From positions 164,066-228,065 of the forward strand of contig NIVC01001863.1 in the NCBI GenBank assembly GCA_002269645.1: a stretch of 64,000 nt of DNA, read 5' to 3'. Each line of letters begins with the position of its first letter. The stretch's first letter is position 1. Shown one piece after another: positions 14,011 to 57,452 of the stretch. Below the pieces are notes generated by a model, which saw nothing but the letters and a program-made list of their open reading frames with translations, searched no databases and was not told where the DNA came from. The position numbers and the translations under genes were made by a program. This DNA comes from Macrostomum lignano (taxonomy: Eukaryota).

Positions 14011-14939
14011 ATGACTTTCACTGGCAGGTGAGCTTGCAGACATTTACTAATTGCATTTGAATGTCTGTCTGTCTGTCTGTCTGTCTGTCTGTCTGTCTGT
14101 CTGTCTGTCTGTCTGTCTGTCTGTCTGTCTGTCTGTCTGTCTGTCTGTCTGTCTGTCTGTCTGTCTGTCTGTCTGTCTGTCTGTCTGTCTGTCTGTCTGT
14201 CTGTCTGTCTGTTTGTCTGTCTGTCTGTCTGTCTGTCTGTCTGTCATTCTGTCTGTCTGTCGACCTGTTTCTGTCTGTCTGTCGACCTGTTTCTGTCTGT
14301 CTGTCGACCTGTTTCTGTCTGTCTGTCGACCTGTTTCTGTCTGTCTGTCTGTCTGTCTGTCTGTCTGTCGACCTGTTTCTGTCTGTCTGTCTGTCGACCT
14401 GTTTCTGTCTGTCTGTCTGTCGACCTGTTTCTTTCTGTCTGTCTGTCTGTCTGTCTGTCTGTCTGTCTGTCTGTCTGTCTGTCTGTCTGTCGACCTGTTT
14501 CTGTCTGTCTGTCTGTCGACCTGTTTCTGTCTGTCTGTCTGTCTGTCTGTCTGTCTGTCTGTCTGTCTGTCTGTCTGTCTGTCTGTCTGTCTGTCTTAGT
14601 GTCTGTCTGTCTGTCTGTCTGTCTGTCTGTCTGTCATTCTGTCTGTCTGTCTGTCGACCTGTTTCTGTCTGTCTGTCTGTCTGTCTGTCTGTCTGTCGAC
14701 CTGTTTCTGTCTGTCTGTCTGTCTGTCTGTCTGTCTCTCATTTTCCCAAGCAACCCAACCGCCCCACATCACTCAGAGTGACCCACTTGGCCACATCCCT
14801 GGCTCTGGTGCTGCTGCTCATCTGCGCTCTCCACACTGAGGCGATCGGGTTGAGGCCCTGGAAGTACGACCGGATTTACAGAGATGAGCCTTCGGACCTC
14901 GGCGGACTGCTGTGGGCCCGCTCCTATATTCCCCGCTGA
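14011..14939 (+). CDS. Secreted peptide precursor, paralog 1 (59 aa): MTFTGRVTHLATSLALVLLLICALHTEA-IGLRPWKYDRIYRDEPSDLGGLLWARSYIPR; exons 14011-14027, 14777-14939
   Basis: ATGACTTTCACTGGCAG|GTGAG donor and CTCAG|A acceptor join in phase 2 to give a hydrophobic signal peptide ending TEA. The same structure recurs at 28107 and 38248. Confidence 0.8.
14061..14735. repeat. (TCTG)n microsatellite filling the intron of peptide paralog 1
   Basis: Direct reading, with interspersed TCGACCTGTT units. Confidence 0.97.
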
Positions 14940-15394
14940 ATCCCAGATGCTGACAGTGCAAATGGGCAGTCGTGTTTACGGGCAGTCGTGTTTAAGTGTT
15001 GGTTTTTGAACTTTTCAAATTGTTTAATTGATAAATACACTGCTTGGCTTACAACCGCGCTATCAAATTATCGGACCGAGTTTGTAGCTATTTGATAAGC
15101 AAGTCGGAAGTGAAAATGGCACACTGAAAATTGTCACTAAATTTTTCAAGACCAGCAGCACTGTTCAGAGAATCAGTGAACACAGCGGCTCTAACTTTTT
15201 ATCTTTAGGCATGTGCACTACTCTGTGCCTTGGGGTTAATGGCAAAGGTAGAGCCAAGCCGAGGTTCTAATTTAGCTTTAAATTAATGTGACTGCACTTT
15301 GGAATCGAGCCCCGGCCGCTGGCAGATCAGAGCGCCGCCTTAGACCGCTAGGCTGCGGCCCCTTCCGCAAGTCCAATGTTCCCCGTCCCCGTCT

Positions 15395-15752
15395 AAGACA
15401 GACAGATCAAACAGACAGACGGACACTGAGACGGACGGACAGACAGACAGACAGACAGACAGACAGACAGACAGACAGACAGACAGACAGACAGGCAGAC
15501 AGACAGACAGACAGACAGACAGACAGACAGACAGATCAAACAGACAGACAGACGGACACTGAGACGGACGGACAGACAGACAGACAGACAGACAGACAGA
15601 CAGACAGACAGACAGACAGACAGACAGACAGACAGACAGACAGACAGACAGACAGACAGACAGACAGACAGACAGACAGATCAAACAGACAGACAGACAG
15701 ACAGACAGACGGACAGACAGACAGACAGACACTAAGACAGACTAAGACAGAC
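15395..15752. repeat. (GACA)n microsatellite
   Basis: Direct reading. Confidence 0.97.
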
Positions 15753-55445: not shown

Positions 55446-56995
55446 GGACGAGCTGTACTATGTGCTCTGGTGGTTCGCGTTCCAGCTTTGTTTCTCGGTC
55501 CAGGCAATATGTAGTAACACACTGCTACTAATTGTCAGCGAATTTGGTTTGCTTGCCTTTCCTATTTACCCCATCCAAGGACTACTGAACATAACAACTC
55601 AGGATGTTACACTCACGAATGGTGGAAATTCTAGAAAAGGCCGCTTGCTTCAGCTGTCTATGGCAATGAAGTCCCTTTTCAATAAAGCTGCGAACGCTTC
55701 ATATATCGCCACCTAATTACATCCGGCATAAAATTTTTGCCCTCGTGTTTTATAAATATATATTTGTCGCTACTCAGTATAAAACTACGAGTATAAAGCA
55801 AACGTAGAAGGCTATAAAAAGTCGGAGCACACTCGTACGAGATATGCTGTTAAGTTTTTGTTCGAAAGAAACAGTTTTTTCGTTGAACCGCATTGAGAAT
55901 CAAATACATTGATACTACTGACACTCGCAAAAATCTCAGTGACAGTCGCCAGGAACTTGAAATTTACTGTGTTCCTTCACATCCAGACAGGTTTCAGTTT
56001 GTGAAGCCTCGAAGTTTCGGAGTCTCTGCGCGTTTCCTTTAGCCAGCCTCCGAGACACTCGACACAGCTGATCAGGATGCAGCTAAACATCCGAAACATT
56101 CTCGAAGATGTTCTCAAACACAAGCGCGTAACTGTTAACACAGCGCTGCCCAGAGTCAAGAGGATGTGCACCAAGACTCAGTTGAAGACTCAGCTTCCCT
56201 CGAGACACTGGCATGGTGAACTCGCTACAAGCAGTCGAAGTATCCATACCAGGCAAGTTTGTTTCAATCGTTCGGTCGGCAGATTCTCTTTGTGACGCAA
56301 TGCAACCACAAATGTAGTAAAGAGAGGCTTTTTGCGCGATAGAAAGTCCAGCAACGGATGAAGGGTCGTTGGGTCGCGCATGGCTGCTGATTCGTTTTAT
56401 CGGATGAGTCAGGAGGGAGCGAGGAGAGCCTGGAGAGATCAGGGCGAGTCAGGATTGAGCAGGGAGCAAGGGGAGTTAGGATGAATGAGTTAAGAGGGAG
56501 CAGTGTGAGAGTCAGAGGGAGCAAGGTAAATAATTTATAAACCTGTTAAGTGCTTTTAGCTCGTAGAACAGGGAAGATGAAGGCTGAAAGTATACTGCCT
56601 TCATTCTGTCACCATTGCGACTCCAGACCGCTACGGTGTCACAAGACAAGTCGTATTCCAAAAATTCATGTAATAGGCATGTAAGTAGTAACTTTAGTAA
56701 AAAATTGCTTGTATTTAGTTAGTTAGGGCTAGAGATTTACTTTGAGAATTCGTATGTGTATGTTAAGTATAAGATATAACCAACTCATCTTACTTTTCAG
56801 GTTTCAGGATCAAGTAAGCTAGTCTATAATAACTTGCTCAGCATGCATTCCAGATGCTATTTTAGAAACCTACGCCATTACGCTATCGCACTTTACTCTA
56901 TGGTATAGTGTGTCTACTTCAGCAGTCTTGCAGCTTTCATTTGATATTGAATTATTTATTTCATTATCCGACGCTTGCCGTGTGAGTCCGACGGA

Positions 56996-57452
56996 ATGGT
57001 GCAACTGCAGCTTCTCCTGATGTTTCTCATTCTCTCAGACATTTTGGTGAGTCCTTGGTTTGATTGAATGATTTGCTAGCTTTTTTACGCTATTCCAAGA
57101 AATTGCCAGTCATTGATGATAGAAATTGCAAAACATGATTGATTAAATGAGGTATACAAGTTGTCACCAGATTCCAACGCGAGTTAAGAGTTTTGTTGCT
57201 GAAGAGGATCATGTGAACTTATGCTCATGCATCATGCTGCAATATGTCAAAAAACTAAAGATTAAAGCCAGCTTGCACCTGTGCACCAACTACATTATAG
57301 TTTCGGAGGCCGCCGTCACGGACAAGACCATGTACTGCGCTCCGCTGGGCACTTCGTGCGACGACTTTTACGTTCGCTGCTGCGTGGGCCAGTGCAAATT
57401 CGCTTTTGTGTTTGACAATAAGCCAGTTTACATTTGCTCGAGACAAGACTAA
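56996..57452 (+). CDS. Knottin precursor 2 (~64 aa): MVQLQLLLMFLILSDIL-AAVTDKTMYCAPLGTSCDDFYVRCCVGQCKFAFVFDNKPVYICSRQD; exons 56996-57046 and 57309-57452 (alternative acceptor at 57300 needs one extra base)
   Basis: Hydrophobic first exon ending at a GTGAGT donor; C-X6-C-X6-CC-X3-C-X13-C framework in exon 2. Exact acceptor uncertain. Confidence 0.7.

Follow-up and report, generated by a model that had tools for sequence, protein, structure and literature searches.

The last 64 kb of contig NIVC01001863.1 of the free-living flatworm Macrostomum lignano (Mlig_3_7 assembly, NIVC00000000) raise the question of whether a group of short secreted-peptide genes lying among transposon fragments forms a specialized defense or toxin island, as a sequence-only reading of this DNA had proposed. 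This whole 64-kb stretch is referred to here as the window; its end is the contig end, and a window position equals the record position minus 164065. Five small secreted-peptide genes were indeed found between 14011 and 57452, the two ends of which are exactly the start codon of the gene V1 and the stop codon of the gene K1. The genes are real, of secreted type, and of two unrelated architectures, represented by the V family (V1, V2, and V3) and by two knottin-type genes (K1 and K2) with an inhibitor cystine knot (ICK) framework. With a probability of roughly 0.6, the window is best understood as an ordinary repeat-rich stretch of the neopolyploid M. lignano genome that harbors secretory peptide genes of two small families, both lineage-restricted. 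By heuristic assessment, an N-terminal secretion signal with a hydrophobic core and small residues at positions -3 and -1 is present in all five genes. Three (V2, V3, and K2) appear intact in the window, and the remaining two (V1 and K1) are damaged.

By DNA reading and gene alignment, V1, V2, and V3 were recognized as three paralogs of one design. V1 (forward strand, 14011-14939; PAA63208.1, Mlig028075.g2) consists of exon 1 (14011-14027), a (TGTC)n intron, and exon 2 (14777-14939), and encodes 59 residues without any cysteine. V3 lies on the reverse strand (38248-37290; PAA63210.1, Mlig028162.g1), with exon 1 at 38248-38232, a microsatellite intron, and exon 2 at 37449-37290, and encodes 58 residues with a C-x10-C loop. 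The spliced V1 and V3 products are identical to PAA63208.1 and PAA63210.1 in every residue. For V2 (forward strand; PAA63209.1, Mlig003555.g1), the GenBank range is 28050-29239, and the GenBank model of 78 residues starts from an upstream ATG at 28050 and excises a 56-nt mini-intron, by which the cysteine loop is deleted. The model supported by homology instead spans 28107-29220 (exon 1, 28107-28123; exon 2, 29021-29220) and encodes 71 residues with a C-x11-C loop. Exon 1 of the family comprises five codons and two bases (ATG ACT TTC ACT GGC AG|GTGAGC; MISNG in V3), and the intron of 0.7-0.85 kb is almost wholly (TGTC)n. Exon 2 encodes a hydrophobic signal core ending in HTEA and the remaining peptide, followed by a conserved block of the 3' untranslated region (3'UTR). 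A scan for signal-peptide exons followed by a splice donor, which found K1 and K2, missed the V genes because their first exon has only five codons. For the same reason, the proposal that all five genes separate a signal-peptide exon from a mature-peptide exon is true of K1 and K2 but wrong for V1-V3, in which exon 2 carries everything from the signal core through the cleavage site to the mature peptide.

The V design continues with a propeptide, a KK dibasic site, and a peptide of about 21 residues with two cysteines (INYxGCxFIRxWGxDCS). It is seen in full in a 74-residue protein (P0003) encoded at a homeologous locus (L007, NIVC01000061.1), which consists of a signal peptide, IGLRPWKYDRIYRDEPSDLGGLE, KK, and INYHGCKFIRDWGWDCSWINR. 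V3 follows the same plan with a short spacer, and its 21-residue peptide after KK ends in a C-terminal glycine; 14 of the 21 mature residues are identical between the two. V2 keeps the GLEKK site with a divergent loop. In V1, the signal peptide and propeptide are retained and the KK site and cysteine loop are gone; about 93 bp coding for them are missing in comparison with L007, and V1 is therefore a truncated derivative. Of the three variable peptides described earlier, two with a disulfide loop, V2 and V3 do have two cysteines each and V1 has none, but the family is not uniformly variable, as the similarity between V3 and P0003 indicates. Processing of precursors at dibasic sites and glycine-directed C-terminal amidation are well-established routes of peptide maturation. 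Judged from its sequence, the V design would be a prepropeptide cut at a dibasic site: signal peptidase would cut after TEA, a proprotein convertase would cut after KK, one disulfide would close the loop, and the terminal glycine of V3 may become an amide.

V1, V2, and V3 resemble one another only in exon 1, in the intron, in the signal region, and over some of the 3'UTR; identity across exon 1, the intron, and the signal region is 83-92% or 87-95%, depending on the comparison. In the signal region, the paralogs differ by 0-1 synonymous and 3-8 non-synonymous changes, corresponding to a synonymous rate (dS) of about 0-0.05, although the counts are small. For the mature region of P0003 and V3, dS is about 0.65 and the ratio of the non-synonymous to the synonymous rate (dN/dS) about 0.4, based on small counts over 23 codons, and the mature parts of V2 and V3 are unalignable. 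Because rates differ so sharply along the V genes, the near-identity of their 5' halves suggests gene conversion or strong nucleotide-level constraint. This pattern resembles conotoxin-type superfamilies, which likewise combine a conserved signal part (dS near 0-0.05 in the V genes) with a divergent mature part. The V family differs from them in having only three or four members at one locus, in the absence of a known venom context, in an intron placed inside the signal-peptide coding sequence after codon 5, and in the fairly conserved loops of V3 and the V1 homeologue.

A HMMER profile search of 1.84 billion representative proteins matched only V1, V2, V3, and a further M. lignano protein of 1077 residues (P0006). 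All of these matches map to this locus, and the V family is therefore confined to it and its homeologues. No meaningful Pfam match was obtained for the V peptides, and their PDB matches (hemocyanin and an epimerase) were at chance level only. With K2, V2, and K1 as queries, word-indexed homologue searches yielded nothing beyond the M. lignano proteins themselves. A relic copy had been reported besides the five genes, and none was detected by tblastn or blastn-short with all V and K exons; a weak match at 21252-21419 was discarded, as it lies inside a P-like relic and has no in-frame start codon. The view that the genes are largely invisible to annotation did not hold either, since V1, V2, V3, and K2 are present in GenBank as hypothetical proteins and K1 is annotated on four other contigs. 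According to the genome paper, the GenBank gene models of Mlig_3_7 were built from a genome-guided RNA-seq transcriptome, and a gene with such a model is therefore transcribed. P0006 itself, for which an exact look-up gave no match, is a chimeric gene model (forward strand, window 27245-49692) assembled from pieces of the locus at 78-100% identity, namely a retroelement protease end, V2 exon 2, an antisense long interspersed nuclear element (LINE), fragments of a DNA polymerase B (polB) gene, and antisense parts of V3 and of a neighboring membrane-protein gene of 142 residues. Ab initio models over this locus can therefore be badly wrong.

The K genes were found by a six-frame scan for cysteine-rich stretches, which yielded two segments with an ICK framework. 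K2 (reverse strand, 45726-45018; PAA63211.1, Mlig016487.g2) has a signal exon at 45726-45660, a phase-1 intron, and an ICK exon at 45166-45018. Its first exon encodes MFQMLACRLHLILIALACAALL and one further base before GTGAGT, its intron carries a minisatellite of fifteen 30-bp units, and its second exon encodes V-AAVPTAAK followed by C6C5CC3C11C. The spliced product of 71 residues is identical to PAA63211.1, annotated as "hypothetical protein BOX15_Mlig016487g2". The window copy of K1 (forward strand, 56996-57452) has a signal exon at 56996-57046, encoding MVQLQLLLMFLILSDIL before GTGAGT, and an ICK exon at 57301-57452, or at 57309-57452 if a downstream AG is used; its framework is C6C6CC3C13C. 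No sequence similarity was detectable between K1 and K2. In K2, as in the intact form of K1, the signal peptide ends at a GTT valine codon interrupted by a phase-1 intron, and because of this common intron an old paralogy of the two genes is inferred.

The strict ICK pattern has exactly two six-frame matches in the window, namely K1 and K2, versus 0.115 expected, and only two of 200 shuffles reach two matches. Comparison with the PDB by phmmer gave weak matches of K2 to pi-hexatoxin-Hi1a, psalmotoxin-1, and nemertide alpha-1 (E 0.016-0.3) and of K1 to delta-conotoxin Am2766 (E 0.023, also weak). In Pfam, K2 scored 16.6 bits against Toxin_12, under the 21-bit cutoff, and neither K1 nor its closest database protein had a match. 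Single-sequence AlphaFold2 models of K1 and K2 had predicted local distance difference test (pLDDT) values of 76.6 and 71.4, and their best Foldseek neighbors in the PDB were nearly all ICK toxins, with template modeling (TM) scores of 0.5-0.66 at non-significant E-values of at least 0.2. With the ICK toxins named above, K1 and K2 share the six-cysteine C-C-CC-C-C spacing, a signal-peptide precursor, and a predicted beta-hairpin fold, and these toxins are their best neighbors in the PDB by sequence and by fold. They differ in that the matches are non-significant and that the host is a free-living flatworm without a known venom apparatus. The ICK assignment of K1 and K2 is well motivated rather than proven, the knotted connectivity (I-IV, II-V, and III-VI) being a prediction.

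The closest database protein to K1 is P0008 (67 residues, Mlig014969.g3), which is 93% identical and annotated on four other contigs, where the order is ABCA, K1, a gene for a 105-residue protein, and Rad9. The window copy is unannotated and absent from the protein collection searched. In the alignment, its first exon lacks one base that three other genomic copies have; splicing to the acceptor of the annotated copies therefore shifts the reading frame of the ICK exon, and an AG lying eight bases farther downstream would correct this. About 3.5 CCCTAA telomere-type repeats at 57450-57478, beginning from the K1 stop codon, form an interstitial telomeric repeat in the 3'UTR.

Tissue-level information is available for one of the five genes. 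In Table S11 of Brand 2020 (PMC7336406), the transcript RNA815_51598, which is mapped to Mlig003555.g1 (i.e., V2) and has a source length of 392 nt and a probe length of 235 nt, is scored as "prostate;testes" by in situ hybridization (ISH), with reference to Weber 2018 (PMC5977470). V1, V3, K1, and K2 were not found in this table under their gene IDs. The forward primer listed for this transcript (AAATGGAAACTTTTTCCGAAAGG) matches the window at 28048-28070, and the reverse primer (GATACCAGTAGCAACCTCGTTGG) matches at 29158-29180, giving an expected amplicon of 236 nt without the microsatellite intron. As the reverse primer lies on the codons of the cysteine loop, the V2 transcript keeps the loop, which supports the 71-residue model over the GenBank model. 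The candidates of Weber 2018 were picked for enrichment in the tail region and for a response to social group size; 76 of the transcripts were limited to the prostate, and 22 were expressed in the prostate and another tissue, mostly the testis (PMC5977470). V2 was among the screened candidates and, like many of them, is short, has a signal peptide, and has no homologues elsewhere (PMC5977470). By ISH it is expressed in prostate gland cells, but it is not prostate-limited and is not one of the 76 prostate-limited Mlig-pro genes. Among the venom, mucus, and seminal-fluid roles that had been offered as options, this result favors the last one, whereas no evidence was found for the other two. In this favored reading, the V peptides would be released into seminal fluid, where they may act on the mating partner or on sperm. 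The sex peptide (Acp70A) of Drosophila, a small seminal product of the male accessory gland that has one disulfide loop at its C-terminus and acts on the mate, could serve as a model for how V peptides might work, as a functional analogy with no homology claimed. In the literature, reproduction-related Macrostomum genes are known to evolve rapidly.

The history of the locus can be read from its homeologous copies. According to the genome paper, 180 Mb of non-repetitive M. lignano sequence lies in duplicated blocks that are at least 95% identical, because the sequenced line has extra chromosome copies. Contig NIVC01000292.1 is collinear with the window over 5.3-20.5 kb and 42.0-54.4 kb at 95-98% identity, and carries V1, K2, the 142-residue membrane-protein gene, ABCA, and K1. 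A block of 21.5 kb (20489-42004, no strand applicable) is absent from it; this block contains the P-like relic, Gypsy-like fragments, V2, a LINE/Tc1 scrap, the polB relic, V3, and a (CTAT)n satellite, and is flanked on both sides by copies of a short interspersed nuclear element (SINE). At the corresponding junction on NIVC01000292.1, there is a single SINE whose left part corresponds to the left copy in the window and whose right part corresponds to the right copy. Such a hybrid SINE is the signature of SINE-SINE recombination, and the block was therefore apparently deleted there. The arrangement with V2 and V3 was probably ancestral and then lost on NIVC01000292.1, as far as this last step can be judged from the junction. 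The V1 mature peptide has been lost in two of three homeologues (the window copy and an identical copy on NIVC01000292.1), and an intact K1 within the order ABCA-K1-Rad9 occurs on at least three other contigs. As separate observations, NIVC01000292.1 has an extra 4.7 kb at window position ~17345, and all similarity of the third homeologue (L007) to the window ends past 15395.

Taken together, these differences bear out the claim of fast turnover, which is seen in the loss of the 21.5-kb block on one homeologue, the loss of the V1 peptide, and the deletion in K1 exon 1. The V genes are clustered because one family was duplicated locally; the cluster would stem from local duplication and inversion of V genes, and the K pair, which is conserved across homeologues, would be an old duplication flanking the ABCA gene. 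After polyploidization, redundant copies would decay by SINE-SINE deletion (V2 and V3), internal deletion (V1), and a 1-nt deletion (K1). Small cysteine-rich secreted peptide genes with presence/absence differences between genome copies are also described for Mytilus CRP-I (PMC10138031). There, the variation is between individuals and tied to immunity; the M. lignano differences are between homeologous copies in one inbred line and involve a single SINE-mediated deletion.

The repeat content of the window looks about normal for its genome. The M. lignano genome is more than 50% repetitive, with long terminal repeat (LTR) elements accounting for 21% and simple or tandem repeats for 15% (genome paper). 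In the window, arrays detected by Tandem Repeats Finder cover ~13.9 kb (22%), and recognizable transposon fragments cover roughly a fifth (~15-25%, an estimate from the feature list). This load is comparable to, and not above, the genome value of more than 50%. The idea of a special transposon-rich compartment is therefore not upheld, and no sign of a dedicated transposon compartment was seen. Several introns of the locus are filled with tandem repeats (14028-14776, 28124-29020, and 37450-38231 in the V genes; 45186-45629; 46716-49425). The (TGTC)n intron is present in all V paralogs, including that of the third homeologue, and the (AATC)n array in the 142-residue protein gene extends over 1.6 kb. 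Two (AGAC)n arrays (15396-15753 and 20703-20914) have no attached V-like exons.

The transposon insertions listed in the sequence-only reading were traced to relics and fragments of uneven standing. A Pfam scan of every open reading frame (ORF) of at least 75 codons in the 12-64 kb part of the window, concatenated with X spacers, yielded DUF7083 and a DDE_3 scrap as the sole additions. The Polinton insertion is represented by a protein-primed polB of Polinton/Maverick type (forward strand, 32465-35389; PF03175, E 4.5e-10 on an 836-codon ORF). It lacks a start codon, and comparison with P0006 shows that the N-terminal third changes frame at least twice before 836 open codons follow. Around it, ORFs of at least 75 codons between 29.2 and 37.3 kb had no Pfam match to an integrase, ATPase, protease, or capsid (capsid models may be missing from Pfam), and terminal inverted repeats were not detected. 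The feature is a polB relic and not an element. Two inverted (TGTC)n arms of ~1 kb (28082-29090 and 37364-38273) had been a candidate for Polinton terminal repeats, possibly with cargo genes; this candidate was rejected because the arms are V2 and V3 themselves, and V1, the third copy, lies 14 kb away without polB.

Gypsy-type fragments and SINEs were recognized. A Gypsy/chromovirus-like fragment (forward strand, 22768-25378) comprises a gag-like ORF (DUF7083), an ORF with an integrase C-terminus (Integrase_p58_C), and an ORF with DnaJ and chromodomain; protease, reverse transcriptase, RNase H, and an LTR pair are all absent from it, and no long direct repeats were found. The last of these ORFs (24380-25378, forward strand) pairs DnaJ (E 6.5e-15) with a chromodomain (E 1.5e-12), which is unusual for a retroelement. 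Activation of LTR elements by heat shock is reported for M. lignano (PMC12801592) and could be set beside this pairing. A second LTR-retroelement fragment (forward strand, 26529-27415) has a zinc-knuckle gag end and an aspartic protease motif, read from the sequence, with a match to RVP (E 0.0015) below the Pfam cutoff. The Tc1 insertion amounts to a 26-residue DDE_3 scrap fused to a LINE reverse-transcriptase tail (reverse strand, 29611-30620; by Pfam), and a second LINE tail lies at 60197-60930 (forward strand). A possible internally deleted P-like element (forward strand, 21414-22116) consists of a THAP-like C2CH motif at 21414-21548, recognized by eye, and C-terminal ORFs; Pfam was negative for all three of its ORFs. 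A tRNA-derived SINE on the reverse strand (41990-42300) has an A box, a B box (GGTTCGACTCC), and an A/T-rich tail, and further copies lie at 12575-12936, 20165-20470, and 20426-20700. The four copies are ~300 bp each, with the B box GGTTCGAYTCC in three of them; ARAGORN and Rfam gave no matches in the window, the SINEs not being called as tRNA. Other repeated sequences include a further dispersed repeat family common to 15995-17380 and 41284-41760 (70-80% translated identity) and a palindrome (42356-42718 and 42855-43154), a near-perfect inverted duplication with arms of ~300 bp and up to 98-100% translated identity, which is partly shared with the homeologous contig.

Against this background, the defense or toxin island can be weighed. 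It would make the V and K products venom-, mucus-, or antimicrobial-type effectors from epidermal, rhabdite, or pharyngeal glands, with transposons driving their diversification. Among solved structures, K1 and K2 come closest to animal toxins and to the antimicrobial ICK peptide tachystatin, but the likeness of the K peptides to toxins extends little beyond the cysteine framework and is non-significant. A conserved V signal region beside a divergent mature region is what toxin and antimicrobial-peptide families show, and there is presence/absence variation between homeologues; the one large homeologue difference, however, is a deletion and not a transposon-driven gain, and the transposons of the window survive only as dead fragments, about as dense as in the genome on average. 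As the sole expression datum, that of V2, points to prostate and testis, and as no evidence supporting the defense or toxin label was found, this explanation is unlikely. It also appears improbable that the V genes encode precursors of endogenous neuropeptides or hormones, yielding a cyclic and perhaps amidated peptide, with the prostate and testis signal reflecting local regulatory use. The layout is that of a classic prohormone (signal, spacer, KK, short disulfide-looped peptide, and a C-terminal glycine in V3), and V3 and P0003 have a conserved loop motif (14 of 21 residues, dN/dS ~0.4 on 23 codons). Most bilaterian neuropeptide families are more widely conserved, however, whereas no V relatives exist beyond the locus in the 1.84 billion representative proteins; the V2 transcript had been selected for its enrichment in the tail and its social plasticity, with staining in gland and gonad rather than in the nervous system, and the V1 peptide is lost in two homeologues.

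Alternatively, the locus may be no functional unit at all, its genes being neighbors by local duplication and chance, with several decaying copies, some of whose products are not made. In its favor, V1 has no mature peptide, normal splicing would leave the ICK exon of the window K1 out of frame, the loop is excised in the GenBank V2 model, one homeologue lives without V2 and V3, and K1 and K2 have no detectable sequence similarity. Yet the intact V2, V3, and K2 frames are transcribed, the ISH amplicon includes the V2 loop codons, the loop motif is conserved between paralogs, and K1 is intact on at least three other contigs with the ABCA-K1-Rad9 context kept, which makes this explanation very unlikely. 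A more far-reaching proposal is that the V peptides are processed, disulfide-cyclized seminal allohormones transferred at mating, that the K knottins are co-expressed male-gland products, that the locus is a hot spot of sexual conflict remodeled between the subgenomes of a very young polyploid, and that the (TGTC)n intron could be a gene-conversion substrate keeping the 5' halves near-identical. As a combination, this is speculative and rather unlikely.

Several points weigh against the interpretation of the window as an ordinary stretch with two secretory peptide families. KK processing, the disulfide, and amidation of the V peptides are all predictions from their sequence. The Foldseek and phmmer E-values of K1 and K2 are non-significant (0.016 to >1), and the Toxin_12 match is below the cutoff. 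The 1-nt deletion in K1 could be a long-read assembly error. Expression evidence concerns V2 only, in prostate and testis rather than prostate alone; moreover, V1 and V3 match some 100 nt of the 235-nt probe at 87-95% identity, and the V2 ISH signal may therefore come in part from these paralogs. Cooperation of the V and K families would be a conjecture.

The remaining genes of the window are of other kinds. A multi-pass membrane-protein gene of 142 residues (reverse strand, 46621-49685), which is not a secreted-peptide gene, has introns with (AATC)n and a satellite of 39 copies of a 19-bp unit. The ABCA-type ABC transporter between K2 and K1 (reverse strand, 50215-55457) is annotated here with 345 residues, as compared with 1664 on NIVC01000292.1 and 873 on another contig; its coding region in the window is split into three ORFs, and it may be another decaying homeologous copy. 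A TCF25 homologue (forward strand, 9947-11863) is an intronless ORF of 638 codons with ~71% G+C, far above its surroundings, and three homeologous contigs carry conserved copies. Downstream of K1, a cysteine-rich, metallothionein-like ORF with C-x-C runs (forward strand, 62595-62975; L008, 15543-15860) corresponds to the protein annotated with 105 residues on homeologous contigs, the C-terminal part in the window being in a different frame. An open frame of 381 codons (reverse strand, 58338-59480) has a weak match to rhodopsin-type G protein-coupled receptors (7tm_1, E 3e-10); three homeologous contigs have no annotated gene at the equivalent position, and an exact look-up of the protein gave no match.

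In the searched literature, no published description was found of the V peptide architecture, the two paralogs, the cluster, or the homeologue differences. The gene IDs and peptide strings were absent from the main texts searched and from the text supplements of Wudarski 2017, Grudniewska 2018, Mouton 2018, and Weber 2018. Likewise, no description of ICK-type peptides in free-living flatworms was found in the searchable literature, and K1 and K2 would extend the range of the ICK scaffold to these animals. The GenBank model of V2 excises the very peptide that V2 appears to encode. The three to five homeologous copies of the locus provide a small worked example of post-polyploid decay in redundant genes for short secreted peptides. 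M. lignano is a hermaphrodite model in which seminal proteins are already known to alter partner behavior; if the V peptides are indeed seminal signals, they would offer a compact and chemically tractable candidate of about 21 residues with one disulfide.

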